A stretch of DNA of 64,000 nt from Sphyrna mokarran. Taxonomy: Eukaryota. The notes under the pieces were generated by a model. That model had not been told where the DNA came from. It saw only the letters and a program-made list of their open reading frames with translations, and did not search any database. Location of the stretch: positions 102,424,001 to 102,488,000 of the forward strand of contig JAGIQG010000009.1 of NCBI GenBank assembly GCA_024679065.1. The letters are read 5' to 3'. Shown here piece after piece: positions 37,691 to 64,000 of the stretch. The first letter of the stretch is position 1; each line of letters starts with the position of its first letter. A program made the translations under genes and the position numbers.

Positions 37691-37744
37691 AATTCTTACA
37701 GGGTAACATGTCACCAGTTGTACGCTTTTCCTCGTTATGATTAG
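35444..37744 (+). CDS. Penelope-type reverse transcriptase ORF (766 aa), truncated before the endonuclease
   Basis: Motifs IKPADKGGA, YCLPKIHK, TMDVSVLYTNI, AMGTKFAPQYAN, RYIDDIF, FLDT, LYRKPTD. The last ~17 codons read into flanking DNA. Confidence 0.92.
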   Translation: MTTIDTAYCRIQVERISKRIAHIDTDIKFLQRCKKADRIPKGLQITNPLRSTYNTDYAERLCRRTSLTLLNRLIHQLYSKRRTLESKMEYIFSTCTQDADQLRNFAKQMRQRNYTIYMHTKNRKLEKLGIATSNNQASLGTTVENNTTAGRSIVNLSDYTLQSEEIEVLSRGLNFCPTTKMNPISLAADTEEFIRRMRLREFFHKPQEANSRHNEIANEPEQPTEGSAVQQPRRNESNWTPPEGRCPRLDMYAQAIRRCVNTRFINRTYKTVPNITPVQRKAIRALKTNRNIVIKPADKGGATVILNRTDYCEEVYQQLNNEKHYRQLPADPTKEHTRQLNTLIKTFDPDLQNTLRALIPHTPHIGDLYCLPKIHKANIPGCPIVSGNGTLCENLSGYIEGILKPIVQRTPSFCLDITDFLQKLSTHGAVETGTLLVTMDVSVLYTNIPHDDGIAATASVLNANNCQFPDAILQLIRFILDHNVFTLNSQLFIQTHETAMGTKFAPQYANIFMHRFEQDFFTTRDLQPRLYTRYIDDIFFLWTHGEQSLKQLYDDINKFHPTIRLTVDYSPESVAFLDTRISIKDGHLSTSLYRKPTDNLTMLHFSIFHPRHVKEAIPYGQALRIHRICSDEEDRDRHLQTLKDALVRTGYGVRLIDRQFQRATTINRTDLLRRRTRDTVDRVPFVVQYFPGAEKLRHLLRSLQHIIDDDEHLARAIPPPPLLAFRQPHNLKQIIVRSKLPNLQENSDHNSYRVTCHQLYAFPRYD

Positions 37745-44602: not shown

Positions 44603-44623
44603 TCAACTTGTTTCATTTCCATC
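44603..44623 (-). CDS. Terminal coding exon DGNETS-stop
   Basis: Acceptor cctttagctgtag after a 124-bp intron, phase 0, TGA at 44605-44603. Confidence 0.5.
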   Translation of the reverse strand, partial: DGNETS

Positions 44624-47600
44624 CTACAGCTAAAGGTAATGAGCTGGGTGCTCGCATTTAAATAGTTTAAGATAGTTCTTCTCCAGTAGAGTTCCTCCAA
44701 TTTAAGCCAGTTTGTCACTGATAGCTGTGCTCCTGGATTTAATTTACCTCTTCATCAGTAGTTGTGGCTTTCAACAAGGGTTCCTTCAGCTCCTCGAGGA
44801 AGAAAAATATAAAAATATGAATTCAAATATCTTCAGCAATGGAAAAATGTTCATTTTTATCAACTCGCAAAAAAAAAGGACAGATCTGTAACTACTGATA
44901 CAAAAATGGAAAATGCTGGAAAATCTCTGCAGATCTGACAGCACCTGTGAGGTGAGAATAGAGACAACGTTTTGAGTCTCGGTGACTGTTTTATCAGAGC
45001 AGGTAACCTGAATTTGATTTGCCTCTACTTTTGAAAATCATGCTTTCAATTTAGTTCTTTCCTTTAAACATGAACAAGTTTAGCTTTTTTTTTGTTAGAC
45101 AGAAGCAACCTGTCAAGGTTTCAATGTATAACTTCAATTTTGATCTTTCTCTAATCTCTGACCATCCATTAGATCATTTATTGTAATTTTCAAACTATAA
45201 ATTTCAACATTAACTATTAATTTTTCTTTAAAGTTTATTTAGTCGTGTCACAAGTAGGGTTACATTAACACTGTAATGCAGTTACTGTGAAAATCCCCTA
45301 GCCTCTTCGGGAACCCTAAGAGAGAATTTAGCATGGCCAATGCACCTAACCAGCATGTCTTTCAGATGTGCAAGAGCAGATTTGGTTTTATTTAACTTCC
45401 CTATGAAAAATTCAGCAGGATGTAATTTCAAAGAAATAATCCCCTTCATCCTTGGATTAAACAACTCTGCTTACAGTAAGCACAGTGGCATGCATGCAAT
45501 TCAGCAGATACTAGAACCTCTCATTTTCCCAAAGTAATTGTTTGGTAGATATGCCGATGACAATAATCTCTCCCTTGATATCAATAAAATAAAGGAGATA
45601 GTTATCAGTGTCAGGAGGACATGCCCCTGTCTACACCAACAGTGATGAAGTGGAGACGGTCAAGAGGTTCAACTTTCTAACTGTTCAAATCACCTGTCCT
45701 GCTCCCTCCACGCTGCACCATAGTTTAGGAAGCCCACCAGCGCTACTACAGAAGGCTAAGGAAATTCAGTACATCCGCTACAACTCTCACCAATTTTTAC
45801 AGAAACACCCTTCCTGGATGTATCGTAGCGTAGTACAGCTCCTGTTCTAACCAAGATCACAAGAGACTACAAAAGGTCATGAATGTAGCCCAGTCCATCA
45901 AGCAAACTAGCCTCCCATCTACTGACTCCGTCTACACTTTCTGCTGCCTCGGAAAAGCAACCAGCATAATTAACGACCCCACGCACCTCAGACATTCACC
46001 TTCTTCCTTCAGGAAAAAGATACCAAAGTCTGAAAACATCTGCTGCCAGCATACTTTTGTATGGTCATGTCACATATTAAGGTCATCTTTCTCTTCACCC
46101 TATCTGTAATTGCAACACTATGTTCTGTACCCTCTCCTTTCCTTTTCCCCAATGTACTCTATGAGTGGTATATTTTGCCTGTATAATGCATAAGAAAAAA
46201 TATTTCTTACTGTATTCCAATGTATGTGACAATAGCAATTCAATTCAATCCAAAGCAATTCAATACAATCAAATTGATTCGATCAAGTCAAGTCAAATCA
46301 AATCAAATCAATTCAATTCAAATCAAATCAAATCAATTCAATCAAATCAATTAAATTCAATTCAAACCAATTCAATTCAAATCAAATCAATACAATCAAT
46401 GCAAATCAAATCAATACAATTCAATTCAATAATCACAGCTGAATAGCAAAAAAGAAACAAAGAACAAGATTCTCTGGCCTCCCCGCGGCATGTTTCTTGG
46501 CAGTAGGGAGTGGCCCTCTGTCAATGGGATGGGAAGATCCCACTGCCATGAACAACTGGAAGATCTTACTCAAAATCTTCCTTTTCTGACAACAATAACT
46601 TGAGAAAGGAAAGTCCATTTAGAGAAAAGTTGAGAGCAAAGGCTGCTTTTCGAAACCTGTGACTTGTAAATGGACCAAATACTTACAAACTGTTGACATT
46701 CATCAGGATCTTTTCCACTGGGAACTGTGAATGCTGTTCCATTTGTCCCCTTATTCAATTTTTTACCTGTTGATGTGAACAGAGAATGAAAAGCAAACTG
46801 AGCAAAGGTTCCGCTGAATAGATAATGAGTAATTATATCGCTCTGTAACATCTTTCCCAAACACGATCTCCTTCACATTTTAACATGCAATTCAACAAAG
46901 TTTAGCAGTCCAAATGAAACTGCTTGCTCATTATATTATTGACTTGCTTATTTTAATGTCTCTGTTGAAAGGGAATTGGTCCATTTCACAGAAATATTAT
47001 ACTCAAAAAGTTAGTTCTATTACCACAGGCTGGTTAGAAGGTCTGTCTTAGTGCTATGAGAGTTCGTCACAGTTATAATAATAGCAGTTAAGGAATGTCA
47101 GCCCACAACCAAGGCAGACCAAAGGCCCAGTAAATGTAGAAAACTCTCGGGCTGCATAACTGCATGCTAATCTATAAAAACAGCACACAGTAAAATGTGA
47201 TGAATGTATATAGTTTGTTAAAGAATTGAACTGTAATGTATGTAATTTCTTGGAACTGAGCACTGTAAAATATTGAAGTTAAGGAAATTGTAAATATGAT
47301 TTTTTGCACTGTTTATAATGATTAGAAATGTCATTTCTGTAATCGTCTATTTCGGAATATTTATGAATAAAATGTTCTTTTGAAATTAAAAAAAATTGGA
47401 AAACCCAGCCCTTTGTAATCATTACAACATGGTGAGGCAGCACAGTGGCACAGTGGTTTGCACTGCTACCTCATAGTGTCAGGAACTCAGGTTTGATTCC
47501 CGGTTTGGGTCACTGTCTGTGCAAAGTCTGCATGCTCTCCCCGTGTCTTCATGGGTTTCCTCTGGGGTGGTCCAGTTTCTTTCTACAGTCTAAAGATGTG

Positions 47601-50600
47601 TGGGTTAGGTGAATTGGCCATGCTAAGTTGTCCCTTAGTGTCAGGGGGATTAGTAGGATAAATACATAGAGTTCTGGAAATAGTGCCTGGGTAGGATTGT
47701 GATTGGTGTAAACTCAATGGGCCAAATTGCCCTCTTCTGCACTGTAAGAATTCTATGATAATAGTTTGGAATCAAGCTCTAAATGCATCAGTATTACTTA
47801 CATATGATATGAAGCACAAAGGCTATTAAAAAGGAAACAAACAGAATTCCCAAAGAAGCAACTATGGTTCCTTGTAGATTGGCTGCTGGTTCACAACCTT
47901 TACCTGTAATGGATAACATCATGAACTGCGGTTATTAAAATTATACAAATGGTCTGACCTCTTGGTTGTATCACAACCACTCACCGCTCCCCAATATTGC
48001 TGCTTGGATTATTATTTCCAGTACGCTGAAGATCATACACTAGAAGGTGGCATAGTGCCACAGTCATTAGCATTGCTGCCTCACAGCACTAGAGATTTGG
48101 GTTTCATTCTGGCCTTAAATGACTGTGCGGAGTTTGTACATTCTTCCCCATTTGCGTGGGTTTCCTCTGGGTGCTCCGATTTCCTCCCACTGTCTAAAAA
48201 TGTCCAGATTAGGTGGACTGTCCATGCTAAATTGTCACTTAATGTCCAGACACGTGCAAGTTAGTTAGATTGGCAATGCTAATTGTCCCTTAGTGTTCAA
48301 AGATGTAAAGTTTAGGTGGATTGACCATGCTAAATTGTCCTTTTGTGTCCAGAGATGTGAAATTTAGGTGGATTGGCCATGCTAAATTGTCCCTTTGTGT
48401 CCATAGATGTGAAGTTTAGGTGGATTGGCCATGCTAAATTGTTCCTTAGTATCCAAAGAACATAGAACAGAGAACATTACAGCGCAGAACAGGCCCTTCA
48501 GCCCTCGATGTTGCGCCGACCAATTAAGAAAAAGCAATGACCCTCTAACCTAAACCATTCCCTTTTCATCCATAAACCTATCCACTGACCACTTAAATGC
48601 CCCCAAACTTGGTGCATCTACAACTGCAGCAGGTAGGGCATTCCTTATCCTTACCACCCTCTGGGTAAAGAACCTACCTCTGACATCCATCCTATAACTA
48701 CCACACCTTAATTTAAAGCTATGTCCCCTCATGCTAGCTTTCTCCATCCTAGGAAAAAGGCTATCACTGTCCACCCTCTCTAATCCTCTGATCATCTTAT
48801 GTGCTTCAAAAAGGTCTCCTCTTAGCCTCCTTCTTTCTAATGAAAACACCTCAAATCCCTCAGCCTCTCCTCATAAGACCTTCCCTCCATACCAGGCAAC
48901 ATCCTGGTAAACCTCCTTTGCACCCTCTCCAATGTCTCCACATCTTTCTTATAATGTGGCGACCAGAACTGTACACAATACTCCAAGTGCAGCCGCACCA
49001 GAATTTTGTACAGTTGCAACATGACGTTGCGGCTCCAAAGTTCAATCCCCCTACCAATAAAAGCCAAGATTTCATATGCCTTCTTAACAACCTTATCGAC
49101 TTGATTGCCAACTTTCAGGGATCTATGCACATATACACCTAGATCCTTCTGTTCGTCAACACTATTAAGAGTCCTACCATTAGCCCTATACTCTATACAT
49201 TTGTTATTCCTGCCAAAGTGAATTACCTCACACTTTTCCACATTAAACTCCATTTGCCACCTCTCGGCCCAGCTCTGCAACTTGTCCAAGTCTCTCTGCA
49301 AACCATAACACCCCTCTTCACTGTCTACCACTCCTCCAACTTTGGTGTCATCTGCAAATTTAGTAATCCATCCTTCAATACCCTCATCCAGATCATTTAT
49401 AAAAATTACAAACTGCAGAGGCCCCAAAACAGATCCCTGAGGTACACCACTTGTAACCGAACTCCATAATGAATAATTCCCAATCAACCACCACCCTCTG
49501 TCTTCTATCAGCTAGCCAATTCCTAATCCAATTAGCTAAATCACCCTCAATCCCATACATCTGCATTTTCTGCAGAAGCCTTCCATGGGGAACCTTATCG
49601 AACGCCTTACTAAAGTCCATATATACCACGTCAACTGCCTTACCCCCATCCACCTCTTTGGTCACTTTTTCAAAAAACTCAATAAGGTTAGTAAGGCACG
49701 ACCTACCCTTCACAAAACCATGCTGACTATCCCCAATCAATTCATTTCTCTCTAAATAACTATAAATCCTATCCCTAATAATTCTTTCCAATATTTTGCC
49801 CACGACAGAAGACTCACCGGTCTATAATTCCCAGGAGAGTCTCTATTCCCTTTCTTGAACAATGGGACAACATTCGCTATCCACCAGTCATCCGGCACTA
49901 TACCTGTAACTAACGATGACCTGAAGATCAGAGCCAAAGGCTCTGCAATCGCCTCTCTTGCCTCCCAGAGAATCCTAGAGTAAATCCCGTCCGGCCCAGG
50001 GGACTTATCTATTTTCAAACCCTTAAGAATATCTAACACCTCCTCCTTATCTACTTCAATACTTTCCAGTTTACAACCCTGTATCCCAGTGTTCTCCACA
50101 ACTACATTTATGTCTCCCTGCGTGAATACCGAAGAGAAATACCTCTCTGTACCTCTGTGATCTCTCTGATCCTCTCTGATCTCTTCAGGCTCCACGCACA
50201 ACTTCCCACTGCTGTCTCAGACTGGCCCTAATCTTGCCCTAACCAATCTTTTATTCTTAACATATCTAAAGAAAGCTTTGAGTTTACACTGATAACTGAT
50301 AATGTACTGATGACAATGAAATCATTGTTGGAAAAACCCATCTCGTTTAGTAATGGACCTGCGGAAAGGAAATCTGCCATCCTTATCGCTTCTGGCCTAC
50401 ATGTGACTCAAAGCTACAGCAATGTGGTTGATTCTCAACTTCCCTTAGGCAAATAAATGCCGGCCAGTGACGCCTACGTCCCACAAATGAATTAAAAGAA
50501 GTTCACCTGAGTCCCAGGATAATCAGATAGAAAGGCACGTGCATCCATAATCGAGACTGGGTGACTGAAGATGTGCACATTAAGTGGATTTACCATACTA

Positions 50601-53600
50601 AATTGTCCCTTAGTGCCCAGGGATGTGCCGGTTAGGTGGATTGGCCGTGTTAAATTGTCCCTTAGGTACAGGGGATTAGGCAGCGTACGTGGATTACAGG
50701 GATAGGGGCTGTTGGGTGGGAGTGTTGTTGGTGCAGGCTTGATGGGCCATATGCCTTATTCTGCACTGTAGGGATTCTACTTGGTACGATTTGTTATCTC
50801 TTATTATAATAAAACAACTAGCCAGGACATTGTGCTTTTAGCATTCTGGACACAGCTTGAAGTATGCATCATAAAGTCACGCATTCTCTGCCTTTGGTTT
50901 CCAATTGCCAACTCTAATTATCTGAAAATTATGGGCATCTTTGTGTAATTTTCAAACTTCACTGCTGAGATGATAACTCCCATTGCACTTTACTGCTGAG
51001 ATGATAACTCCCATTGCAAATTTCTTTTGCGCTTTGAAAATAAAAACCTCGCATAAAATCTTTAACTTATCCCCATTTGTAACTGGTCCATCATTGTTGA
51101 TCATTCTATCAGCCCCAGGGACGGCCTCGGGTTATTGTCTGTGCAGAGTCTGCACATTTTCCCTGTACCTGCATGGGTTTCCTCCAGGTGCTCCGGTTTC
51201 CTCCCACAGTCCAAAAGATCTGCAGGTTAGGAGGGTTGGCCATGATGAATTGCCTGTTAGTGTCAGTGTAAATATATGGGGACAGGGTGGGTTTGTTGTT
51301 GGTGCAGGCTTGATGGCCTGAATGGCTTCCTTCTGCACTGTGGAATTCCAGTCTATGACTTGATGGGATTAGATTTGGACTGGTCTGCAAAACAGCTAGT
51401 ATGGACACGATAGATGGAGTTAATGGGGAGGGGGAGCGAGGGAACAGGAATCACTGTTGACAATAGTGGGACCAGTGATCCCATCGCTGGCCAGTAGTGG
51501 GTGGTATCTCCTGCTGCAATACATGCCACGGGGTGGAACAGAACATCTTACTCTATGGAACGAATAGCCTTCTGCACTGTGACCCTCAATACGAAACATT
51601 GGCAATAACAACTGCATAACTTGCTCTCCTGTTCGGACTGTTCCTAGGATGTGACATCTGGAATGAGTTTATTGACCGTGGTTTAATCACTGAACACTCA
51701 CCAGTACGCTTCACAATTTCAGCGATCAGGACGGTTGACATACATATCACAATGATTCCACTCAGTGGAGTAACGATTGGGGTCAGTCGGCAAGCTGGCA
51801 ACAGATAAAAGACAGAATCACAGAGTATGCACACACCCAACAGATGCCCTGGTCCGCCTGCCGAACTTTGAGAAATGTGACTGGTCAAGGACAGCGCAGG
51901 GGCGATTTTCTCAGTTACTGAGTTTGGGATTACTGGGTCATCAGGACTTTGAAGGGCTAGGTTTGTCATGGTCATTTCCGGTGCCTGGGTCAAGTCCAGG
52001 AGTCCGTCCAGTTTCATTTGTTATTGGTTTTCTAACAGTTTGGTACAAAATAATTGGTTGTGTGACCATTTCGGTGGAGTCGTCCATATTGTGGCTCTGG
52101 AGTCACACGTAGGCAAGGACAGCAGATTTCCTTCCCTAAAAGACATTAGTGAACCAGGACAATTGGGAGGAGAGGGCAACAGGCCTCTCACAGTCCATCA
52201 ATGATAGCATTGAATTAAAATTGACAAATAGAAATTCACCCAGCCTCGATTATGGATTCTATCTGACTATCCTGGGACTCAGGTGAACTTCTTTTAATTC
52301 ATTTGTGGGACGTAGGCATCACTGGCCAGCATTTATTTGCCAAAGGGAAGTTGAGAATCAACCACATTGCTGCAGCTTTGAGTCACATGTAGGCCAGAAG
52401 AGATAAGGATGGCAGATTTCCTTCCCGCAGGTCCATTACTGAACCAGATGGGTTTTTCCAACAATGGGTTCGTTGTCATCAGTACATTATTAATTCAAGA
52501 TTGTTTTTATTGAATTCAAATTTCATCATCTGCCATGGCAGGATTTGAACCCAGGTCCCCAAACATTAGCGGAGTTTCTGGATTAATCGTCTAGTGATAA
52601 TATCACTAGGCCATCATCTTCCCAGGTCTAAATGGTCCNNNNNNNNNNNNNNNNNNNNNNNNNNNNNNNNNNNNNNNNNNNNNNNNNNNNNNNNNNNNNN
52701 NNNNNNNNNNNNNNNNNNNNNNNNNNNNNNNNNNNNNNNNNNNNNNNNNNNNNNNNNNNNNNNNNNNNNNNNNNNNNNNNNNNNNNNNNNNNNNNNNNNN
52801 NNAGTGTGTACATATCTGTGTACACATAAATATCTATGTGAATGTATCTGTATGTGCGTGTGTATGTGTGTGTGTGAATATGTATGTGAATGTGTGTGTG
52901 AATGTGTGTGTGAATGTGTGTGTGAAGTGTGTGTCTGTGTAAATGTATCTGTGTGAGTGTGTGATTGAGTGAATGAATGAGTGAGTGAGTGTGTGTCTTC
53001 TAGCCTTGTAGAATCAGAAGACTGTGGGATCAAACTCACTTGAAGACTTGACTGTATATTCTAGGCTAGCACTTCAGTGCAGTAGTGTGCAAGTGTGACT
53101 CTGTCAGCAACACTGTGTTCTGAATGTCAAACTTCGGTTTCTTACTCTCCATCAACTCAATATAACAATCCCAAGGCACTATTTTCAAAGAAGAACGAGA
53201 AAATCTTTCATCATTCAACCTTCAAACATCAAACCAAACTACCCAGTCAGTTACCTCACTGGTGTTTGTGGGACATTGGTTAATCTCAATCTAGCTGATG
53301 TTTCCCACATTATAGCAATGGTTAGATTTCAAGGTCAATTCATTGACAATGAAATGTTTGAGATTCGAAAGGTGCTATACAAATGCAAGTGCTTTTTATA
53401 TAATTTACAGTGCATGGCAGTCTCAGTCTTGTTCAAACTGTACAGAAGGAAGTCATTAATGTAGCCATAACATTCACAAACAGTGTTTCAAACATTTGCA
53501 ATTTCCTGCAGAACTGTTCCTCAAGATAGATCCATTTAAAAAGACAAAAGTAGGAAATAACTTGACAAATCTCATGTTATTTCTGTCAGCCCTTGTCCCC

Positions 53601-56600
53601 AGTTTGTTCAAATAGTAAAATAAAGTGACTTATGTGGTTGAAAAAGGATCATGGACATAGAATCCCTACTGTGTAGAAGGAGACCATTCAGCTCATTGAG
53701 CCTGCACTGACCACCCAGGCCCTTTGTCTGTAACTCCATGTATTTACCCCGCTAATCCCCCGATACTAATGGGATAATTTAGTGTGGCCAATCTACCTAA
53801 TCCACACGTTTGGAGCATGGGTGCAAACCGGAGCACCCGGAGGAAACCCACACAGACACAAGGAGAATATACAGACTCCACACACACACTTAAAGCCCGA
53901 ATCAAACCTGGGTCCCTGACTCCATGCTACTGTGCTACTATGCTACCATTGTATTCAACCAAATACAATTGGTATTATTTGGAAACTCCAGGGTAGAAAT
54001 TTGTCTGTTTTCTATTTCTTGGGCGTGAAATTGCTGCATTATACACAATTTCTCGTTCTGCACCGAATCCACTTCTGGTAGCTAGGCTGCTTTAGTTTTG
54101 GTCCTCTCTGCTTTTAGGCTTCCCAACAGTTGCCTTCAATCAGCAACAGATCAATGTAAAGGCACAAAGAAGGGCCCAGCACTTGCTGCCAGACCCTTCT
54201 GTGAAATATAATTTAAAGAACAAGATTGAATAGGTGCTATGCATTTTCCTTCCAGTTTCTTTCATTATGGCGCACAGCTGTTAGCACTGCTCCCTTACAG
54301 TGCCAGGGACCCACGTTCAGTTCCAGTCTGCGTTGAGGTGGAGATTCCCAAAACCATCAGAAATGATCATATCAATGAAACAGCGTTCAGTTGGAGGTGG
54401 CTGCGGGAAATCAGAAACTGAAGGCCCTTTTGTTGAGGTTGCCTTGAGTTTGTCATCAGGCTCAGATAGCTTGGGTGGCGCAGTGGGTTAGCACTACTGC
54501 CTCACAGTGCCAGGGACCCAGGTTCAATTTCAGGCTCGGCTGATTATCTGCATGGGTTTCTTCCTGGCTTTTCCTCTCACAGTCCAAAGATGTGTAGTTT
54601 AGGGTGATGAGCAGTGTAAACGCACGAGATTATGGGGTTAGAGTGGGGAGTAGGCCTGGGTGAGGTGCTGAATCGGCGTGGATTTGATGGGCCGAATGGC
54701 TTCCTTCTACACTGAGTGAGTGTTTTGAAGGGGCTATGCTGAGTACTGCCTTCCCACACTCAATGGAATTTTACCATCCTGCCTCAGAAATTGTGGCGGG
54801 TGGGACGTGGGCCGTGCAAAGCCCCATTAACCTTACCGGTCTTGGTTAGAGCACAGTGGAAAATCCCACCCAGAGTGTGTTACTCGACTCATCTCCCAAG
54901 ATTAACGGAAAGTCAACAGGTCTGAATCCAAGCCAGTACGTTGAGCAGGCTGTCCCATCGCCTCCTCAACTCCCGCCCCAGCTTAAATCTCCACCTTACC
55001 AATCCTCCACCCACTTCACACCCACTCTCCACTTTAAATGCGCACCGCATCAACTCCCCACCCCCACAACATTACCCGTAAGGGCTTTGATAGTGTGATA
55101 CGAATATGTAACTTGTATCTCAACTTACATTTGAGAATCGTATTTAACACTTTTGAGTCACAGACCTTCATATTACCAGCCAAAAGTAAGGCTCTTATTG
55201 ACAGGAGGCACACAAACACCAACGAGAACACTGTGATTTCAGAAGCTCCTGTTGAAATAAAACAGAACATGAACAGAGTCAGAGACATTCAGAGATTAGA
55301 CACCATTAAATACCATTGTTATTTCATTCACCACTCTGTCTTTCACAAGAACCCCCTAAGAATTCATAGAGGAGTCTATATTTGATAATACATTTTGTTT
55401 TTTTTTTAAAAAAGCCTTTGCAAAGACTCATGACTAAGTTAAAAGCATATAGAGTGACTCAGGGAACAAGTAACAAAAATGGTTAAGAAGCTGCTTAGGT
55501 TGGTAGGAAGAATGAAGATTCACACATGGCTTGGAAAATATTAGTTTAAATAGGATGGAACAGCAAGGGATATAGATAGAAAACCCGTAAAACTAGTGGT
55601 TACCACTGCTCCCTTGCTGCTGCATCTCCACATCATGGCCTCACTGCGCCAGGGTGCCAGGTCCAATTCCAGTTTTGGGTGACTGTCTCTGTGCGGTTTG
55701 TATGTTCTTCCTGTGTCTGCTTGGGTTTCCTCCCACTGTCCAAAGATGTCTAGGTTAGGTGGATTAGCCATGCTAAAATGTCCCTCAGCCTCCAAAGATA
55801 ATCAGGTTAGGTGGATTGGCCATGCTAAATTGTCCCTCAGTTTTCAAAGATGTGCAGGTTAGGTGGATTGGCCATGCTAAATTGTCCCTCAGTTTTCAAA
55901 GATGTGCAGGTTAGGTGGATTGGCCATGCTAAATTGCCCCTTAGTGTCTAAAATTGTGTAAATTAGTCATGGTAAATGCATGGGGTTATGGGGATAGGGC
56001 AGGATAAATGCTCTAAGTGCTTTTTCAGAGGGAGAGTCAGTGCAAACTTGACAGGCCAAATGGCCTTCTTATGCACTTTAGGGATTCTATGGTGCAATAG
56101 TTAAAAATGCGTTTAAACAAAAGTTGGGGCCCATTACAAGGGGAATACTGTTGAAATGATGAGAAGTAACTTCTGTTAAAACTTTGGCTAGACCACGTTT
56201 AGTTCTGCCTAAAAAATGATAGAAGCACTATAAACATACAAAAGAAATTTATAAGAATTATACAAAACTGAAAAGTTATACCTGTGAGGAAAGGTTGGAG
56301 CTCAACTATATCAACTGAGAGGTTATTTATACCTGTGAGGAAAGACTGGTAGAATAAATGTAATGAATGTTTCCACTTGCGGACAAAGTGTGCATCGTCA
56401 ATATAAGATAATCTAATAAGAATTCAAGTGAAACTTTTTTTGCCCAGAAATTGATTCAAAAGTGGATTGGTTACCATATAATGTCTGAGGGGATAACGTG
56501 GATTCAGTTCACCCAAAGCACACGGAGGAGAATGAAATAGAAGGAAGTGCTAAGTGCATAAATTGAAGAGGAAGGAGAAAAGGCTCAGATGCAGCATCAA

Positions 56601-59600
56601 TGCTAGTATGAAAGGGCCGAAGGGCCTGTTTCAATGCTGGAACTCATGTCAATCGTTGAGTACAATATTTCATTGGGGAGCCAATGGGAAACGTTCTCTG
56701 ATCAGGTGTATGGAAAATTTTGGGAAATAAGATTATACAGCTCATCATGCCAGCATTCTTAACTTCAGACCAGACAGAGCTAACAGGACCCACGGAGTGA
56801 TACTGTACAGGACAAGTGCGATAACTCTGTCAAAGCTAACACACAGATTGGCACAGAAAACACATCCCTCGTCCATTGACAGGTTAAGGATGACTTGCAT
56901 TAGTGTCATAGAGCAAGACAGCATGGAAACAGACCCTTTGGCCCAACCAATCCATGCCAACAATGATGCCCTCCCAGCTAATCCCAATTGCCCGCATTTG
57001 GCCCATAACCCTCTATTCCTCTGTCCCTGTTCTTTATCGAGAAGGAGATCAGTCTGAATTGCATTAACTTTTTCCCATTGTCTTTGGCTGGTGTTAGCAC
57101 ATTCCTGCATTGACAGAATATCCGAGACTCGTCTGCAATTGGTTTCTGGGAGAACAGAAGATTGACACTTTGCAGTCTCAATGACTGACAGCATCATACA
57201 GGCAAGCTTACCAATACGTGGCAGCAGTACCTTCTAATTCCCGGTTTTTAATCAAGTATTTTCTTTGGTAAACAAACCTGACTGTTTACCCCACTGACGT
57301 TATGCCCCAGATAATTTTAAACAAAGATCAGGAAAACACAATTTCAAAACTCAAGTGACTGGAAAACCTCAGCAGTTCTTTCATCTGTAAGAAGAGGAAA
57401 GAGCTAATGTTTCAAGTCCAGATGATATTTTATGAAAGCCTAAAGTGACTGATTCACTGTTGTCATGCAAAACAGAGCTGGGTAATCTCAGAAAGGTGCT
57501 GAAAAACATTGCATGACAACACTGCACATATTAAGGGTTAAACTGAGCAACTGGTTGCTTTCTCTTTAAAAATTTCAAAAGAAAATCTTTCAACTATTTC
57601 GTTCATAATCTACTATGCAGAACAGGTCTCGATAATTTCACGCTATTTCTTGTTTTCTTCCCATCTATATTTAAGCATTTGATAGAATTAATTGTCATTT
57701 AGAAAGGCAAGAACCAGTCAGAGATGGTCAGCATGGATTTGTCAAAGGAATGTATTGCCTCACAAACTCGATTGAGGAAGTGACAAGGAGAGTTAATGAA
57801 GGTAGTTAATGCGGTGGATATTGTGTACATGGATCGCAACAAGGTGTTTGACAAGGTCCTACGTGGCTCTAATGAAGGGTTATCCAGAGTCGAAAGTTTG
57901 GCTCCATTCTTTTTCCACAAATGCTGTCAGACCTGCTGAAACTTTCCAGCATTTTCTGCTTTGTCCTACATGATCAAAATAAGTAAAGGCCTATGTGTAA
58001 CAGGGTAATATGGCAAACTACACAAAAGTTGCCTTGGTAACAGGAAACAAAGGGTAATTGTTGATAGCTGCCCTTTTGAATGGAAAATTGTTTCAAGTGT
58101 GGCTCGGTGTTGGGACCTTATTACTTGTGAGGGTGACATGGTGGCACAGTGGTTAGCACTGCTGCCTCACAGCACCAGGGACCCAGATCGATTCCCAGCT
58201 TAGGTGACTATCTGTGCAGAGTATGCATGTTCTTCTCCAATCTGTATGCATTTTCTCAGGGTGTTCCAGTTTCCTCCCACAGTCCGAAAGATATGCTGGT
58301 TAGAGCACACTGGCCATGCTAAATTCTCTCCCAGTGTACCCGAACAGGCGCCAAAGTGTGGCGACTAGGGAATTGTCACAGTAACAGTGTTAATATAAGT
58401 CCACTTGTGACACTAATAAATAAGCTTAAAACTTAAACATACCTTCAACATATATCCAACATCCAAAAGCACCAATAAGAAATTGAAACTGCAGGACGTG
58501 TAATTCAGGTTGAAGAAGCAGAACAGCTGGAACAAAAAGAGAATTCATTTCAATGTTGGTTGAGAAAGAAATAATCTCACATCCTACAAAGAAACAGAAT
58601 TCAGTTTTAAACAATAGAAATGTCTGTGTTTCAGACATGAAAATAAGTGTTTCATTGGGTCTGTATTATTAAACTATAATATTTTAAAACTTCCAGCATT
58701 AAAGTTGCAAAACTCAAAAAAAAAAGTGTTCTTACGTATTGTTTTGGGTCCAAAGAAGAACAAAATTAAATTTAAAGCCAAGGCAGCCACAGCAGTGATG
58801 AGTGCAGCAATGGAGAATACCTCTGCATAACGGTGCAATGGTGCCACAGCTACAATAGAAAGTTTAAAAGTTTATTTATTATTAGTGTCTCAAATAGACT
58901 TACATTAACACTATAATGAAGTTACTGTGATAATCCTCTAGTTGCCACACTCCAGCACCTGTTCCAGTACACCAAAGGAGAATTTAGCAACTAACCAGCA
59001 CATCTTTTGAACTGTGGGAGGAAACCCACGCAAGCATGGAAGAAAGTGCAGATAGTGACCCAAGCTGGGAATCGAACCCAGGTCTCTGGTACTGTGAGGC
59101 ACCAATGCTGACCATGGTTAGCACCCACAAAGTTTATTTCAAATGTATACTACTTTAAATCTGTTAACAATTGCAAAAAGTGTCTTCTTTATCTTAAAAT
59201 GTATTTATCGACATTCTTGAATGTTGGAAACTAAATATATCCACCAGGCATGCCTACTACTTCAAGGTGAAACACTTATTCTCTATTTTTCCACAACAGT
59301 GTACCACAACAATAGAAACATAGAAAATATGAGGAGTAGGCCATTGGGTCTTCGAGCTTACTACGTCATTCATTAAGATTATGCTGATTCTCTATCTCAG
59401 TGCCATTTTCCAGTGCTCTTTGCATCCCCCTTGAAACCTTTAGAGTCTAGAAATCTATTTACTTATTAAATACCTTCAGTGATTTGAAGCCCTACGGCCT
59501 TCTGCAGTAGAGATTTCCACAGGTGCACTGTCCTCTGAATGAAGCAATTTCTCCTCATCTCAGGCCTAATTGACCTACCACATCCTAAGTCTGTGACCCC

Positions 59601-61596
59601 TTATTCTAGACACCCAGAAAATACAACATCCCTACATCCAATCTATCCAATGCTGTCAGAATTTTATACATTTCAATTAGATCCCCTCTCATTCTTCTAA
59701 ATTCCAATGAATACAAGCTTGGTTGACCCAATGTCTCCTCAGTTTGTTTCACTGCATCCTCTTGATAGCAAGTATGTGGCAAGGAGACCAAAACTGCATT
59801 CAATATTCTGAATTTGGTTTCAGCAAGGCCATATGCAGCTGCAATAAGACATCCTTGCTCCTGTACTCAAGTCTTCTTGCGATGAAGATCAACATATCAC
59901 TTGCCTTTCTAACTGCTTTCTGCACTTACATGCTTGCTTTCAGTGGCACCATGGTCAGAGTTGTACCATGTCTCCTATCATGGGAATCGGAGCGGGTGAG
60001 GGGCGAACCATGGAAAGGTCTGTTGACTTTGGGCAGGGTTTTACTGTTTCGGGATGTAAAACCCTGCCCCATGAATATATCAGAATGTAATGTTCCATTT
60101 CCCATATTGGGCAAATTATCAACACTCTTAAAGGGAATGTGAAGTTAAAATTGTGATTTTTCACGTTGGCGCTTTCAGTGTGTCAGGAAATTGCACATGA
60201 CCAGTCTATTCCTCGTCCTATCTCCTACCTTGAAGATATATAACATTATTCCCATAACATCTTTGGAGAGACTGAGTGAAAGGCAAAGTCAATGGAATGT
60301 AGATTCAACTAATGAATGGAATAGACTGACAGGCGTGACTCACTGGAAATGACAAGAGTATAGGAGTGGTTCTTCTTGCTGACGGCGTTCTCCACTGTAC
60401 ATGTGTAGATCCCACAGTCTGACTTGCTGGCTTCAGAAATTATGAGCTTGCTGCTGTTTTGCGCGAACTGATAATGTTGGCCGTTTTTTAATACTTCAAC
60501 ATCTTTCCTCCACAAAATGGATCTCGCTTTCCCCATGGACACTCGATAGGTCAGCTCAATGGTGCTATCCACGTAGATAGCATTGATCAATGGTTCTGAT
60601 AGTGCCTCTGTGGGGAGAGAAAATGTTCAGATAAACAGGTCTGAGTATGTAGATACCATTGTTACAAGTTACAATGGTGTAGTTAACTAAAAAGAGTTGT
60701 GACCTTCACAGATGCATCAGAGTACCCACAACCCTAAACTGATTCTGTAATCCGGTCACTTAACTCCATCATCTCCTACTTCACCCATCACCCTTCTAAC
60801 TCCCAGACTCTATTAATCTAATGGTCAATGTACTGCCTCGCATCCCCCATTCTTTAACTCATCTAAAATTCTGCTGCCTGTTTTGTATCCTGTACCATGT
60901 CCCAGCCACTCCTGTCCTCACTGCCCTGCACTGTGTCCTCTCTATCAATTGTCGAAATGTAAAATTCTTGCCTCATGTCAAAATCCTATTTTTATTTTAC
61001 TCTTTGTATTTCTGTAAACTATTCCAATTCTTCAAAACTACTCCTTCCACCTCCCTGCCTCTCCCACAAAAATCTCCATTCCTTCCACAAAAATCTCCAT
61101 TCCTCCCACTCTGGTCTTTGTTGCATTCCATCAGTGGCGGCCACTGTCTTTGGAATTATTCCTTTGGCAGAATAGGCATGTGAGGGCCTGTTCCCAGTCC
61201 TATCTTATGACAAGAGTTCTCAAGTGGAAAACAATCCATGTGATGAAAAGTCTGTCAGTTTCAAAATGTCGAATTGTTGAAAGCACTTACCGATAAGGTT
61301 CAAATCAGTACTTCTTATCAATTTACCCTCTACGTTGATGGAATAAACTCCTTGGTCACTAGGCTTTAAATGGTTTAATCTCAATGACCCAGTGGATGAA
61401 CTGAAGAGTAAACGAGATTTGAAGTGCTTATTTGGTTTCTTGATTGGGTGATTTGGCATGTAATCCAAAATGGTAACCAGGTTCCCATCAGCGCCAGTGA
61501 ACGTCCACACAACTTCACTCTTACTGAGGTCAACTCCATATCCTGGGTCCAATAAAACTGATGAACCAATGGCAGCAAACATTTCATTTCTTCCAG
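44603..61596 (-). CDS. Spliced gene (10 coding exons in window): IgV + IgC2 + five transmembrane helices + short cytoplasmic tail; CD2/SLAM-like ectodomain on a CD47-like membrane domain; possibly a decaying paralog
   Basis: Join on minus strand 61596-61291, 60607-60344, 58849-58736, 58526-58443, 55248-55129, 51794-51702, 47903-47802, 46766-46687, 44792-44748, 44623-44603. All introns are GT-AG with matching phases (1,1,1,1,1,1,1,0,0), giving one open frame of about 409 aa ending in TGA. No start/leader exon found in window. Confidence 0.85.
44748..44792 (-). CDS. Exon: cytoplasmic tail 2
   Basis: Long pyrimidine tract ending in atypical gag acceptor, donor GAG|gtaaat, 45 bp, phase 0-0. ELKEPLLKATTTDEE. 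Confidence 0.65.
45550..46236 (+). mobile_element. Rex1/Babar-type LINE 3' portion
   Basis: Homologous to 16820-17630; runs into pentanucleotide tail. Confidence 0.8.
46237..46430 (+). repeat. (TCAAA/TCAAT)n microsatellite expanded from the LINE tail
   Basis: Mixed pentamer array directly 3' of the Rex/Babar element. Confidence 0.95.
46687..46766 (-). CDS. Exon: cytoplasmic tail 1
   Basis: Acceptor ttctctgttcacatcaacag, donor T|gtaagt, 80 bp, phase 1-0. CKKLNKGTNGTAFTVPSGKDPDECQQF. Basic stop-transfer residues directly follow TM5. Confidence 0.82.
47080..47396 (+). mobile_element. Tx1-like 3'UTR/poly(A) remnant
   Basis: Ends tttatgaataaa...tttgaaattaaaaaaaa like the 40181-40886 element. 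Confidence 0.5.
47802..47903 (-). CDS. Exon: extracellular Cys loop plus transmembrane helix 5
   Basis: Acceptor ttatccattacag, donor T|gtaagt, 102 bp, phase 1-1. GKGCEPAANLQGTIVASLGILFVSFLIAFVLHII. Not shown in the ORF track. Confidence 0.88.
48200..48457 (+). repeat. ~52-bp tandem repeat inside a V-SINE
   Basis: About five copies of gatgtg..gttaggtggattggccatgctaaattgtcccttagtgtccaaa; continues at 50569 after a LINE insertion. Confidence 0.85.
48458..50281 (-). mobile_element. CR1/HER1-type LINE, 5'-truncated RT region with frameshifts
   Basis: DKSPGPDGI, NYRPVSL, QHGFVKGRSCLTNL, YMDFSKAFDKVPH, SGVPQGSVLGP, KFADDTK, RLHLEYCVQFWSP; (TTCTATG)-type tail. Confidence 0.95.
50961..51018 (+). 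repeat. 27-bp direct repeat
   Basis: actgctgagatgataactcccattgca at 50961 and 50992. Confidence 0.9.
51702..51794 (-). CDS. Exon: transmembrane helix 4
   Basis: Acceptor ttttatctgttgccag, donor G|gtgagt, 93 bp, phase 1-1. SCRLTPIVTPLSGIIVICMSTVLIAEIVKRT. Confidence 0.87.
52639..52802. other. Assembly gap (run of N)
   Basis: 164 N characters inside the TM3-TM4 intron. Confidence 1.
52803..52996 (+). repeat. (TG)n/(TGAA/TGAG)n simple repeat
   Basis: Degenerate TG array adjoining the gap. Confidence 0.95.
55129..55248 (-). CDS. Exon: transmembrane helix 3 plus cytosolic loop
   Basis: Acceptor ttttatttcaacag, donor T|gtaagt, 120 bp, phase 1-1. GASEITVFSLVFVCLLSIRALLLAGNMKVCDSKVLNTILK. Confidence 0.87.
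55740..55955 (+). repeat. ~52-bp tandem repeat inside a V-SINE
   Basis: About four copies of the same unit. Confidence 0.85.
58443..58526 (-). CDS. Exon: transmembrane helix 2 (more polar)
   Basis: Acceptor ctctttttgttccag, donor AG|gtatgt, 84 bp, phase 1-1. PVLLLQPELHVLQFQFLIGAFGCWIYVE. Confidence 0.85.
58736..58849 (-). CDS. Exon: transmembrane helix 1
   Basis: Acceptor ttctattgtag, donor C|gtaaga, 114 bp, phase 1-1. TVAPLHRYAEVFSIAALITAVAALALNLILFFFGPKTI. Confidence 0.9.
59312..59945 (-). mobile_element. CR1 3' portion, degenerate (intronic)
   Basis: LYSLEFRRMRGDLIEMYKIL; catagaaa tail. Confidence 0.8.
60344..60607 (-). CDS. Exon: Ig C2/I-set domain
   Basis: Acceptor ttttctctccccacag, donor A|gtgagt, 264 bp, phase 1-1. 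EALSEPLI...IELTYRVSMG...ILWRKD...NSSKLIISEASKSDCGIYTCTVENAVSKKNHSYTLVIS. N-glycosylation sequons NSS and NHS. Confidence 0.92.
61291..61596 (-). CDS. Exon: N-terminal Ig V-set domain without the canonical disulfide (CD2/SLAM/CEACAM type)
   Basis: GRNEMFAAIGSSVLLDPG...EVVWTF...FKSRLLFSSSTGSLRLNHLKPSDQGVYSINV...TDLNLI. C-strand Trp and DxGxY motif present, no Cys. Donor G|gtaagt at 61290. Acceptor ambiguous (in-frame gag at 61597 vs out-of-frame aag at 61626). Confidence 0.9.
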
Positions 61597-61889
61597 CTCA
61601 TTAATGTAAAATACAAAATTTATTCCTTTAAAATGTGACAATGAAGCACCGACATTCAGCGACAGTAGTGAAGAAAGGGGCAATGGCTCAGTGGTATTAT
61701 CGCTAGAGTAGTAATCCAGGGAAATTTTCTGGAGACCAGGGTTTGAACCTCACCATGGCTGATGGTGAAATTTGAATGAATAAAAATGTGGAATTTAAAG
61801 TCTAATGATGACCATGAAATGATTGTTGTAAAAACCTATTTGGTGGGCAACACAGTGGTATAGATGTTTTCCTGGGCACCCGTTAGCCT

Positions 61890-63100
61890 CCTACACTCCA
61901 GGGAAAAAAAGTCCCAGTCTATCCTGCCTCTCCTTATAACTCAAACCATCAAGTTCTGGTAGCATCCTAGTAAATCCTTTCTGCAGGCTTTCTAATTTAA
62001 TTTCTATAATAAGGTGACCAGAACTGTTCAAAGTGTTCCAAGTGTGGCCTTATCAATGTCTTGTACAACTTTAACAAGATGTCCCGGCTCCTGTATTCAA
62101 TGTTCTAACCAATGCTGAATGCCTCCTTACCACGCTATCCACCTGTGACTCCACTTTCAAGACCTATGAACCTGTACCCCTAGATCTCTTTGTTCTATAA
62201 CTCTACCATTAACTGATTAAGTCTTGCCCTGATTCAATCTACCAAAATGCATCACCTAGCATTTATCTAAATTAAACTCCATTTGCCATTCATCGGCCCA
62301 CTGGCCCAATTGATCACCATCCCATTGCAGTCCTCTATAACCTTCCTCACTGTCCACTATGCCACCATTCTTAATGTCATCTGCAAACCTACTAACTGTG
62401 CCTTCTCAACTCTCATCAAATCATTTACATAAATGACAACTAACAGTGGACCCAGCATTCCTCAGTACTGATTCCTGAAACATACCACTGTCACAGGCCT
62501 CCAGTTTGATAAACACACCTCTACAACTATTCTTTGTTTTTTGTCATCAAGACAATTTTGTATTCAATTGGTTACTTTGCCCTGGATCCTATGAAATAAA
62601 CTTATGCAAGAATCTACCATGCAGTACCTTGTCAAAGACCTTGCTAAAGACCACATGGGCAACATCTGCTGCACCGCCCTCATCTACCTTCTTGGTTAGT
62701 CCTTGAAAAAACTCAATCAAATTTGTGAAATATGGTTTTCCACTCACAAAGCCATGCTGACTGTCCTTAATCAGTCCTGGCCTCTATAAGTGCCTGTAGA
62801 CTCTGTCTCTCAGAATATTTCAAACAACATTTCCACTACAGATGTTAGGCTCACCAGTCTGTAGTTCCCAGGCTTTTCCCTGCAACACTTCTTAAATAAA
62901 GGCATAATATTTGCTACCCTCCAATCTTCAGGCACCTCACCAATAGCTGTCAATGATCCAAATAACTCTGCTAGGGGATCTGCAATTTCCTTCCTATCCT
63001 CCCACAACATCCTTAGATACATTTCATTAGGTCCCAGGGATTTATCTACTTTGATACACTTTCAGACTTCCAGCACCTCCTTCTCTGTAATATGTACACA
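61890..63100 (-). mobile_element. CR1 RT region, degenerate
   Basis: EVPEDWRVANIMPLFKK...NYRLVSLTS; FADD antisense at ~62375. Confidence 0.85.
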
Positions 63101-63649
63101 AAGATGGTGAGTTTTTTTTCTCTCAGAAGGTTGTGCGACTTTGGAACTCTCTGCTTCAGAACACAGTGGAAGCAGGATCATTGAATATTTTTGAGATTAT
63201 GCTGGATAGATTGTTAGGCAAGGGATTTGAAGGTTATCAGGCATGAATTCTAAGCACTGAAAGTAAGCTTGTAGGTTCAGTAGGCAGTTTTTTTTAAATT
63301 GAAGTCTGGGACAAGGATGTCACAGACTGTCCACCATTTATTGCCCATCACTAGTTGTCCAAGGGCGGTTGAGAGTCAACCACATTGCTGTGGCTCTGGA
63401 ATCATATGTCAGCCAAACTAGGTAAGGACGGCAGATTTCTTTTCCTAAAGGGACATTAATGAACCAGATGGATTTTTCCAACAATCGACAATGGTTTCAT
63501 GGTCATCAGTAGATTCTTAATTCCAGATTTTTTTATATGTATTTCAAATTCCACTATCTGCTACGATGGGATTTGAACCCAGGTTCCCAGAACATTAGCT
63601 GAGTTTCAGTGTCAATACTCTAGTGATAATAGCACTGGGCCATAACCTC

Positions 63650-64000
63650 CCCAAAGGCAAATGGTATGTTGGCCATCACAGTGAGAGGATTTGAATATAG
63701 AGATAGGGATGTTTTGCTGCAATTGTACAGGTTGTTGGTGAGACCACATTTAGAATATTGTGTGCAGCTTTGGTCTCTTTATCTGAGGAAGCTGGAGCTA
63801 TAGCTGGAATACAGTGAAGATTTATCAGCTGATACTGGGATGGCAGGTCTGTCAGATGAGGAGACACTAAGTTGGTTAGGATTGTATTTACAGTAGATTC
63901 AAAAGAATACTCCCAAAGTTGGGGGAGTCCAGGATTAAGGTTCATCATTTGAGGATAAGGGGTAAACATTTTAGAACTGAGAAGAGGAAAAATTTCTTCA
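63650..64000 (+). mobile_element. CR1 fragment running off the window
   Basis: ttggtgagaccacatttagaatattgtgtgcag (LVRPHLEYCVQ). Confidence 0.8.

Follow-up and report, generated by a model that had tools for sequence, protein, structure and literature searches.

The window analysed here is a stretch of 64,000 nucleotides from Sphyrna mokarran (contig JAGIQG010000009.1, positions 102,424,001 to 102,488,000), and all positions below are counted from its first letter. It holds a minus-strand gene at 44739-61596, with nine exons in order from an IgV exon to a second tail exon. Identities in the following list refer to P0004, a database protein of 427 aa from Mustelus asterias.

61291..61596, minus strand: IgV exon, phase 1-1, 306 nt, 101 whole codons, AG/GT borders; 91/101 identical to P0004 residues 24-124
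60344..60607, minus strand: IgC2 exon, phase 1-1, 264 nt; 76/87 identical to residues 126-212
58736..58849, minus strand: TM1 exon, phase 1-1, 114 nt; 35/37 identical to residues 214-250; hydropathy 2.56
58443..58526, minus strand: TM2 exon, phase 1-1, 84 nt; 20/27 identical to residues 252-278; hydropathy 1.65
55129..55248, minus strand: TM3 exon, phase 1-1, 120 nt; 29/39 identical to residues 280-318; hydropathy 2.6
52639..52802: assembly gap (N) inside the TM3-TM4 intron of 3,334 bases
51702..51794, minus strand: TM4 exon, phase 1-1, 93 nt; 26/30 identical to residues 320-349; hydropathy 2.67
48550..50201, minus strand: retrotransposon reverse-transcriptase ORF fragments in the TM4-TM5 intron, not part of the gene
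47802..47903, minus strand: TM5 exon, phase 1-1, 102 nt; 28/33 identical to residues 351-383; hydropathy 2.93
46687..46766, minus strand: tail exon 1, phase 1 to 0, 80 nt; 20/26 identical to residues 385-410
44739..44792, minus strand: tail exon 2, with the TAA stop at 44741-44739; 16/17 identical to residues 411-427
44603..44623, minus strand: proposed third mini-exon of the tail, with six codons followed by a stop, absent from the P0004 model

The splice borders of the nine-exon model are canonical (AG at 9/9 acceptors, GT at 8/8 donors), and the first seven exons (IgV, IgC2 and TM1 to TM5) are all symmetric, of phase 1-1. A tblastn search of the window with P0004 aligned all nine exons, in order and on a single strand (E-values from 7e-55 to 1.5e-4). 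Overall, 341 of 397 codons are identical (86%), and six of the seven codons that introns split encode the residue found in P0004. The reading frame is open in each of the nine exons, with no frameshift and no internal stop codon. This exon-by-exon match is far beyond chance, and judged by sequence P0004 appears to be an ortholog-like protein of the window gene. We found no signal-peptide exon in 61597-64000, the ~2.4 kb upstream of the IgV exon; apart from this unseen exon, the window copy is an intact gene. A preliminary description of the locus had proposed ten in-frame GT-AG exons, with the tail on three small ones and none listed for a signal peptide. Nine exons stand, by their borders and their match to P0004, and two of these encode the tail (46687-46766 and 44739-44792); the tenth, which was to be the third tail exon, is not supported by P0004, which stops in tail exon 2 (44741-44739). 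The span of this mini-exon (44623-44603) was derived from the start coordinate of the earlier finding. It may be the tail exon of an alternative isoform, which is conceivable because some paralogues have longer tails. The same description gave an IgV domain, an IgC2 domain and five hydrophobic segments, with one symmetric phase-1 exon for each of these segments, and the Pfam matches, the exon phases and the P0004 alignment bear this out.

The IgV exon matches the Pfam V-set family (E 1.9e-6), and the IgC2 exon matches I-set (E 2.6e-13), Ig_3 (1.3e-9) and also Ig_2. The IgV exon encodes no cysteine, and neither do residues 24-124 of P0004. The IgC2 domain of the window copy has an additional cysteine in its E-F loop and a tyrosine in place of the B-strand cysteine, which is present in 26/26 rows of the family alignment that cover IgC2. 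When models bearing the head were searched against the PDB by fold, the closest structures were CD58, CD48 and 2B4, so that the head is CD2/CD48/CD58/2B4-like by fold. The Pfam family Receptor_2B4 scores above its cut-off in the paralogues P0001 and P0176. As in the CD2 family (CD2, CD48, CD58, 2B4/CD244, NTB-A), whose ectodomains come closest to the head in structure, a V-set domain that lacks the canonical inter-sheet disulfide precedes a C2-set domain. CD2-family proteins, however, have a single membrane pass or a GPI anchor, and SLAM receptors use ITSM tails for signalling, whereas here the head is mounted on a five-helix body. An IgV plus IgC2 ectodomain is also common to HEPACAM and HEPACAM2, and automatic naming therefore chooses the HEPACAM label. 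HEPACAM proteins are single-pass, with one helix and a long cytoplasmic tail, in contrast to the five helices and ~43-residue tail of the window gene; the label comes from automatic names alone and ignores the five-helix body.

With the IgV exon as query, an exhaustive phmmer search retrieved 296 proteins (E≤1e-3); over this exon, the top full-length relative is 90% identical. An HMM of the body matches 101 of 215 retrieved proteins. Every named member is from an elasmobranch (18 species, sharks and rays), and two come from a separate annotation project (chiPu_ and scyTo_ names). The preliminary description had spoken of a poorly characterised Ig family of cartilaginous fish. The family exists, in sharks and rays; holocephalans are missing from the family matches, and for this reason we state its range as elasmobranch. 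Its members are called 'uncharacterized protein', 'hepatocyte cell adhesion molecule-like', 'HEPACAM family member 2-like', 'CD48 antigen-like', 'CEACAM1-like', 'CD276 homolog', 'hemicentin-1-like' or 'contactin-6-like', much as that description had anticipated SLAM- or HEPACAM-like labels from annotation of the Ig exons alone. Naming by Ig domains alone can thus mislabel whole families. Conservation extends over the body as a whole: jackhmmer E-values reach 1e-69, and for members from stingrays they are about 1e-38. Because the exons are symmetric, there are variants with extra or missing Ig domains and bodies of seven segments in which the TM2-TM3 part is repeated. Several isoforms lack one TM exon (e.g., P0013, P0029, P0154 and P0160), and forms with an IgV directly before the body occur only as isoforms or paralogues (P0164, P0180, P0046, P0071). 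We found no published description of the family in the literature. This is a large, undescribed multigene family of elasmobranchs, with a two-Ig CD2/CD48-like head on a five-helix body. To our knowledge, the only other protein that combines an Ig head with five membrane helices is CD47, the "marker of self". The family thus represents a second design of this kind, present in shark and ray genomes as many genes each and hidden under HEPACAM-like or CD48-like names.

The five helices foreseen from the letters alone are recovered in the AlphaFold2 models of both P0004 (pLDDT 73; helices 216-245, 250-278, 282-307, 318-351 and 359-391) and P0164 (pLDDT 74.3), packed together and with pLDDT mostly of 70-90. 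A crude hydropathy count over the 101 body-bearing members gave five segments in 47, four in 26 and six in 11; the counts other than five arise in part because TM2 is weak, long helices are split and isoforms skip a TM exon. TM2 is the least hydrophobic of the five segments. It ends with a near-invariant tryptophan (W274 of P0004), followed by a turn of three residues into TM3 that contains a glycine (G279 of P0004) invariant in 32/32 aligned members; in the window, the codon of this glycine is split between the TM2 and TM3 exons. The TM3 exon carries a basic, cysteine-bearing loop predicted to be cytoplasmic, the TM5 exon starts with a predicted extracellular TM4-TM5 loop with a conserved cysteine, and tail exon 1 encodes a juxtamembrane cysteine and basic residues. 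The Ig head would face outward and the tail the cytoplasm, because the number of helices is odd and both the TM3-TM4 loop and the start of the tail are basic. The TM4-TM5 loop of the window copy has a net positive charge although it is placed outside, a mild conflict with the positive-inside rule. The window tail, of about 40-43 residues on two small exons, has no tyrosine. Across the family, the 66 unique tails have a median length of 42 aa; 3/66 contain an ITIM-like and 1/66 an ITSM-like motif.

The E-F loop cysteine of the Ig domain and the cysteine of the TM4-TM5 loop are both encoded in the window copy. Among 51 non-redundant members, 42 have both, 6 neither, 2 only the loop cysteine and 1 only the Ig cysteine (Fisher p 1e-5, a test that ignores kinship). 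A kinship-aware test, which is underpowered, had 5 independent pairs, of which 2-3 went the same way and none the opposite way (p at least 0.25). The predicted disulfide between the two loops probably helps to fix the orientation of the head. In CD47, the C15-C245 bond has this effect.

We consider it probable that the window gene belongs to an elasmobranch multigene family whose products, with a two-Ig head, five helices and a short tail, are cell-surface recognition molecules in the manner of CD47, CD48 or CD58. The V domain, of the CD2/CD48/CD58 type, would contact a partner on another cell, either a member of the family or a CD2/SLAM-type receptor, while the five-helix bundle would keep the head in a fixed orientation. 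Since the tails are short and variable and hardly ever contain an ITIM or ITSM, any signal would be passed on either by contacts that the helix bundle makes laterally or by the partner cell. By analogy, such a mode of action would resemble that of CD47, and also of CD48 or CD58 where these act as ligands. The ligand, the site of expression and the immune role are all what we infer; for elasmobranch immunology, the family would be a candidate system of ligands or receptors.

As described in PMC8410850 and PMC10902115, CD47 has an Ig head that leads straight into five helices, short tails that small exons encode and that mostly lack a tyrosine signalling motif, and extracellular loops of very few residues; the window family is alike in all of these. 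PMC8410850 further describes a disulfide, C15-C245, that joins the Ig domain to the TM4-TM5 loop; the window family likewise has a cysteine in that loop, matched by one in the neighbouring Ig domain on the side that faces the membrane. The paper also reports a conserved G191 at the top of helix III, kept even in poxvirus copies; the invariant glycine of the family has the corresponding extracellular position, a single glycine being weak evidence. There are also differences. CD47 has one IgV before its helices, whereas the window gene has an IgV and an IgC2; the bonded Ig domain of CD47 is this IgV, whereas here it would be the C2/I-set domain; and the distal V domain is cysteine-free and of the CD2 type. 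The linker between the Ig domain and helix I carries an SWF loop motif in CD47 (PMC8410850), which is missing in the window copy and in P0004, the family consensus keeping a Leu-His pair. CD47 is a single gene, in contrast to a multigene family, seen only in elasmobranchs, whose variants have between three and seven hydrophobic segments. The neighbours of human CD47 are BBX and IFT57; no other genes were found within the 64-kb window.

It is possible, though in our judgement rather unlikely, that the family is a true but very divergent relative of CD47: an ancient Ig plus five-helix lineage, expanded in elasmobranchs, that gained a distal CD2-like V domain, with the membrane-proximal Ig domain and the body homologous to the IgV and membrane domain of CD47. 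The identical order of parts, with one helix per exon, is consistent with such descent, as are the cysteine pair that parallels C15-C245, the glycine at the position of G191 and an ECL2 of 7 residues, against 8 in CD47 (these CD47 features from PMC8410850). CD47 is covered in Pfam by two families, PF08204 (V-set_CD47) and PF04549 (membrane region). The former gave sub-threshold matches on the membrane-proximal domain of 5/6 members (E 0.012-0.38). In BFVD, a library of viral structures, a poxvirus CD47-like protein ranked first (E 5.1e-7, 290 columns) and others ranked 5, 13 and 33; these entries are OPG166, 128L and 'Leukocyte surface antigen CD47', OPG166 and 128L being the CD47-like genes of poxviruses. 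The matches are full-length (284-311 columns, identity 12-13%), but their TM-scores are only 0.22-0.28 and their rmsd 20-25 Å, which suggests a common order of parts and not a common bundle. Against shared descent, PF04549 had no match at E≤10 in six full-length members, eight isolated bodies and nine window exon translations, and a profile of eight bodies matched none of 177,635 PDB sequences at the same threshold. CD47 was also outside the top 50 in four whole-model PDB fold searches, whose lists were filled by Ig matches, and did not appear when we looked again. The absence of the SWF motif and the CD2-type distal V domain point the same way. In the bundle of CD47, helix III is central. According to PMC8410850, the membrane domain of CD47 resembles no other protein, and its crystal construct has BRIL inserted in ICL1.

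A further step, for which the odds seem to us poor, would be that the family and CD47 are the two surviving branches of an ancient jawed-vertebrate lineage of disulfide-tethered Ig/five-helix proteins; elasmobranchs would have expanded it into clustered, fast-evolving 'identity' ligands whose CD2-type heads are read by paired receptors, and tetrapods would have kept CD47 only. The 'unique' fold of CD47 would then gain a family and an origin. Any relationship to CD47 would supply missing relatives for the origin of its fold and of the disulfide tether. The preliminary description had allowed for either a distant relationship to CD47 or convergence with it. If the two are unrelated, they have converged on the same arrangement, with an Ig head carried by a membrane bundle, which would suggest that it solves a general problem.

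Two other alternatives concern the gene itself. That the window copy is a non-functional or unexpressed, decaying paralogue of a real family seems improbable. The tyrosine at the B-strand position of IgC2 could reflect a decaying copy or a base error, and the signal-peptide exon not found within 2.4 kb upstream and the retrotransposon fragments in the introns would fit decay; but one A/G difference may stem from polymorphism or from an error in the assembly, a first intron of more than 2.4 kb is ordinary, and the copy retains nine open exons with canonical splice sites, zero frameshifts or stops and its overall identity to P0004, which reaches 85-95% in the TM1, TM4 and TM5 exons. That the multi-pass models are artefacts, with hydrophobic exons that are alternative single TMs or a separate neighbouring gene wrongly chained to the Ig exons, is hardly credible: the database members are predicted models, some isoforms skip one TM exon (and the topology would therefore invert) and the hydropathy count is not always five, but Ig domains are followed by the same colinear body of five parts in 18 species, across sharks and rays, and in two annotation projects, this body is conserved as a unit, the Ig and loop cysteines are nearly always both present or both absent, AlphaFold packs the five helices, and the phase 1-1 common to seven exons means that these can only be read through together.

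In the TM4-TM5 intron, the reverse-transcriptase-like ORF translations are of 99, 216, 136 and 149 aa; we assigned them to a retrotransposon by reading the translations, without a family search. The exons flanking the TM3-TM4 intron encode residues 280-318 and 320-349 of P0004, and the split codon gives residue 319; since residues 280-349 are thus encoded around the N gap, it removes no coding sequence relative to P0004, and it may contain an additional alternative exon. Adjoining the gap, at about 52803-52960, is a simple G-, T- and C-rich repeat.

The minus-strand gene in the window is real and belongs to a real family. Both Ig-like open frames of the ORF listing lie on this strand, and Pfam identifies the first Ig exon as V-set (61594-61292, E 1.9e-6) and the second as I-set (60605-60345, E 2.6e-13). 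The short hydrophobic exons matched zero Pfam families, as expected at lengths of 23-39 residues. A scan of the minus strand for open, hydrophobic, AG-to-GT-bounded stretches of phase 1-1 gave four clear exon candidates and several weak ones. The exon chain was checked independently, with no exon joining, by using the IgV exon alone as a query against 1.84 billion representative proteins. This search identified 296 proteins at E<=1e-3. The reference for the exon chain is P0004, a 427-aa protein with the source name "uncharacterized protein LOC144497485 [Mustelus asterias]", which is 90% identical to the window gene over the IgV exon and comprises a signal peptide, V and C2 domains, five hydrophobic segments, and a short tail. 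Searched back onto the window by tblastn, P0004 aligned in nine colinear minus-strand pieces (E 7e-55 to 1.5e-4), and this alignment fixed the set of nine exons.

Exons of the window gene, with residues identical to P0004
61596-61291, minus strand, IgV exon, 91/101
60607-60344, minus strand, IgC2 exon, 76/87
58849-58736, minus strand, TM1 exon, 35/37
58526-58443, minus strand, TM2 exon, 20/27
55248-55129, minus strand, TM3 exon, 29/39
51794-51702, minus strand, TM4 exon, 26/30
47903-47802, minus strand, TM5 exon, 28/33
46766-46687, minus strand, first tail exon, 20/26
44792-44739, minus strand, second tail exon, TAA stop included, 16/17

In total, 341 of 397 residues are identical. The GT-AG sites and compatible phases claimed in the preliminary description are borne out by the borders of these exons: all nine acceptors are AG, all eight donors are GT, and each of the first seven exons is a multiple of three in length and begins and ends in phase 1. 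At six of the seven split codons, the encoded residue is that of P0004 at the same place. Because the database protein next closest to P0004 is only 64% identical to it, we infer from these identities that the window gene is probably the P0004 orthologue in a nearby shark species, or else a very recent paralogue.

The comparison with P0004 also served to prune the models. The hydrophobic candidates 56332-56240, 53888-53829 (within a SINE-like repeat), and 51857-51702 were dropped because they are not in P0004, and for TM3 the 55129 donor was preferred over a shorter variant with its end at 55177, because P0004 lacks the short form. The ten-exon architecture originally proposed stands for nine exons (IgV, IgC2, five TM, and two tail exons) by the match to P0004, and falls for a third tail exon reaching down to 44603, which P0004 does not use. 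The sole reading that ends at 44603 is a six-codon mini-exon (44623-44603), spliced from a GTAAAT donor inside the second tail exon. Since longer tails are present in some paralogues, this mini-exon may be an alternative form of the window gene; nothing here supports it. The signal-peptide exon (P0004 residues 1-22), which the preliminary description does not list, was not found in 61597-64000 by a scan for an ATG, a hydrophobic stretch, and a donor, nor by short-word tblastn. The sole product of the scan (62458-62389) is reverse-transcriptase (RT)-like, and the translation of a 7-residue tblastn match at the window edge is non-hydrophobic.

The window copy departs from its relatives at one canonical position. 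The B-strand cysteine codon of the C2 domain is replaced by a tyrosine codon at 60553-60551 (minus strand, IgC2 exon), whereas the position is a cysteine in P0004 and in 26/26 of the rows that include the IgC2 domain in the 32-sequence family alignment. The tyrosine codon is one base from a cysteine codon, and it may reflect a genuine substitution, a polymorphism, or a mistake in the assembly. As the codon reads, the F-strand cysteine of this domain is left without its usual partner.

The AlphaFold2 model of P0004, made with the 32-sequence family alignment (mean pLDDT 73), has two beta-sandwich domains and five long helices (residues 216-245, 250-278, 282-307, 318-351, and 359-391), and so shows both the two-Ig head and the five helices that had been proposed. 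P0164, a natural isoform made of a V domain and the membrane body, is also modelled with five helices (pLDDT 74.3). In fold comparisons of the head, unrelated Ig domains come within one Z unit of its closest matches. The V exon of the window gene lacks cysteine, as is the habit of the CD2 family, and Receptor_2B4 exceeds the Pfam cut-off in two paralogues.

The membrane-body profile, constructed from retrieved proteins, has a match in 101 of the 215 proteins retrieved. Those with a source organism are from elasmobranchs in every case (33 and 36 rows of two listings, and 30 proteins looked up with their cluster members). They come from eleven shark species (Mustelus asterias, Carcharodon carcharias, Scyliorhinus canicula, S. 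torazame, Heptranchias perlo, Heterodontus francisci, Chiloscyllium punctatum, Stegostoma tigrinum, Hemiscyllium ocellatum, Pristiophorus japonicus, and Rhincodon typus) and seven batoid species (Rhinoraja longicauda, Pristis pectinata, Hypanus sabinus, Mobula birostris, M. hypostoma, Hemitrygon akajei, and Amblyraja radiata). Among the matches listed, from non-exhaustive word-indexed searches and the best 150 of the 296 exhaustive matches, neither holocephalans nor bony vertebrates are represented. Searching for homologues with only the body region gave 3 matches, a number limited by the word index, and a search of the ESM Atlas with the body gave no usable match. Members of one species share one chromosome-sized record, with four loci on a 140,552,254-base record in Mustelus and at least seven on a 19,913,265-base record in Pristis.

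The source names of these proteins are either "uncharacterized" or taken from Ig-only relatives (HEPACAM-like, CD48-like, CEACAM1-like, CD276, hemicentin-like, contactin-like, and VEGFR2-like), exactly the kind of mislabelling anticipated for annotation based on the Ig exons alone, which was expected to yield SLAM- or HEPACAM-like labels. Two members were named by a different annotation project (chiPu_, scyTo_). A full-text literature search, with most subscription journals outside its scope, found no description of the family, and the retrieved parts of a 2026 survey of the conservation of the human IgSF (PMC13262535) do not mention such proteins. As far as this literature search reaches, the family is undescribed in print.

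Family members differ from one another in whole exons; with symmetric phase 1-1 exons, shuffling of this kind leaves the frame intact. Three paralogues have two V domains (P0001, P0005, and P0006), one has two C2 domains (P0011), three lack the C2 domain (P0164, P0016, and P0180), and some isoforms miss TM1 or TM2. In P0022, P0155, P0165, P0169, P0171, P0170, and P0016, the body profile matches the TM2-TM3 part twice, which suggests seven-segment bodies arising by duplication of a symmetric TM exon pair. Four proteins (P0002, P0007, P0003, and P0182) resemble fusions of two or three bodies in a single model, and may come from the merging of adjacent genes. Counted by hydropathy, 47 of the 101 members have five hydrophobic segments, 26 have four, 11 six, 9 three, and 8 another number; this crude count is a rough guide, as TM2 is too weakly hydrophobic to register and long helices are counted in pieces.

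Descent of the family and CD47 from one ancestor is possible but, in our view, less likely than not. The Pfam profile of the CD47 membrane region (PF04549) has no match at E<=10 in six full-length members and eight isolated bodies, and a profile of these eight bodies, made from stretches of family proteins, matched 0 of 177,635 PDB sequences at the same threshold. Whole-model fold searches of the PDB yielded lists filled with Ig domains, CD47 being absent from the top 50 each time. In the construct used for the CD47 crystals, the first cytoplasmic loop carries an inserted BRIL domain, according to PMC8410850, the paper on the CD47 structure, and this insertion would hamper a fold match. In a library of viral structures, poxvirus CD47-like proteins rank first (E 5.1e-7, 290 columns) and also 5, 13, and 33, and their alignments run end to end with TM-scores of only 0.22-0.28. 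These matches show a common order of parts rather than a common bundle.

Three parallels with CD47 stand on the other side, the CD47 details again coming from PMC8410850: a cysteine pair, a glycine, and loop lengths. One family cysteine lies in the TM4-TM5 loop, and an extra one in the neighbouring Ig domain, in its E-F loop, which should face the membrane by the usual Ig strand order. Of the 51 non-redundant members, 42 carry both cysteines, 6 neither, 2 only that of the loop, and 1 only that of the Ig domain (Fisher p 1e-5, kinship ignored). The tree offers no more than 5 independent pairs, of which 2-3 go the same way and 0 the other way, an underpowered comparison (p>=0.25). Both cysteines are absent from P0152, P0153, P0164 (Scyliorhinus), P0024, P0166, P0053, and P0002, where Trp, Arg, Thr, or Leu takes the loop position; these are natural "double mutants" comparable with the cysteine-bearing paralogues. 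The glycine of the TM2-TM3 turn is invariant in 32/32 members, and CD47 has G191 at the equivalent place, kept even in viral copies (PMC8410850). The loops are of similar length in both. The SWF linker of CD47 is absent from the family. On CD47/BBX synteny, the full-text literature search found nothing.

The family has short tails (66 unique ones, median 42 residues), with ITIM-like motifs in 3/66 and an ITSM-like motif in 1/66. That of the window gene lacks tyrosine. Cysteines adjoin the cytoplasmic ends of its TM3, TM4, and TM5, and we speculate that they are lipidation sites. The most likely role would be that of a surface recognition molecule whose CD2-type V domain is presented to a second cell. 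Orientation of the head and lateral contacts would be provided by the five-helix bundle together with the putative disulfide. By analogy, the partner would be another family member or a CD2/SLAM-like receptor, and the system would have an immune role.

In the rest of the window we found no second family member, only repeats and an RT-like ORF. This 766-aa ORF (35444-37744, plus strand), the longest in the window, resembles the reverse transcriptase of a retroelement, with an N-terminal extension. LINE-like reverse transcriptase ORF fragments lie at 48550-50201 (minus strand), inside the TM4-TM5 intron, and at 24870-25286 (minus strand), and C-terminal RT tails of this kind occur repeatedly in the window. 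A run of N (52639-52802) sits in the TM3-TM4 intron. The P0004 residues encoded on either side of it are contiguous, so that no coding sequence is lost relative to P0004, and the ORFs drawn across the run are artefacts of it. A G/T/C-rich simple repeat (52803-52960), translating as Cys-Val-Cys-Glu runs, abuts the gap and probably explains the assembly break. A short interspersed repeat is present at many sites in the introns, on both strands (e.g., 47445-47612, 51135-51321, 53744-53996, 55654-55951, 58099-58368, and 58938-59130). Its translation repeatedly reads "LPHSTRDPG..." and "RWIGHAKLSL", and its open frames mimic hydrophobic exons, which accounts for false exon candidates.
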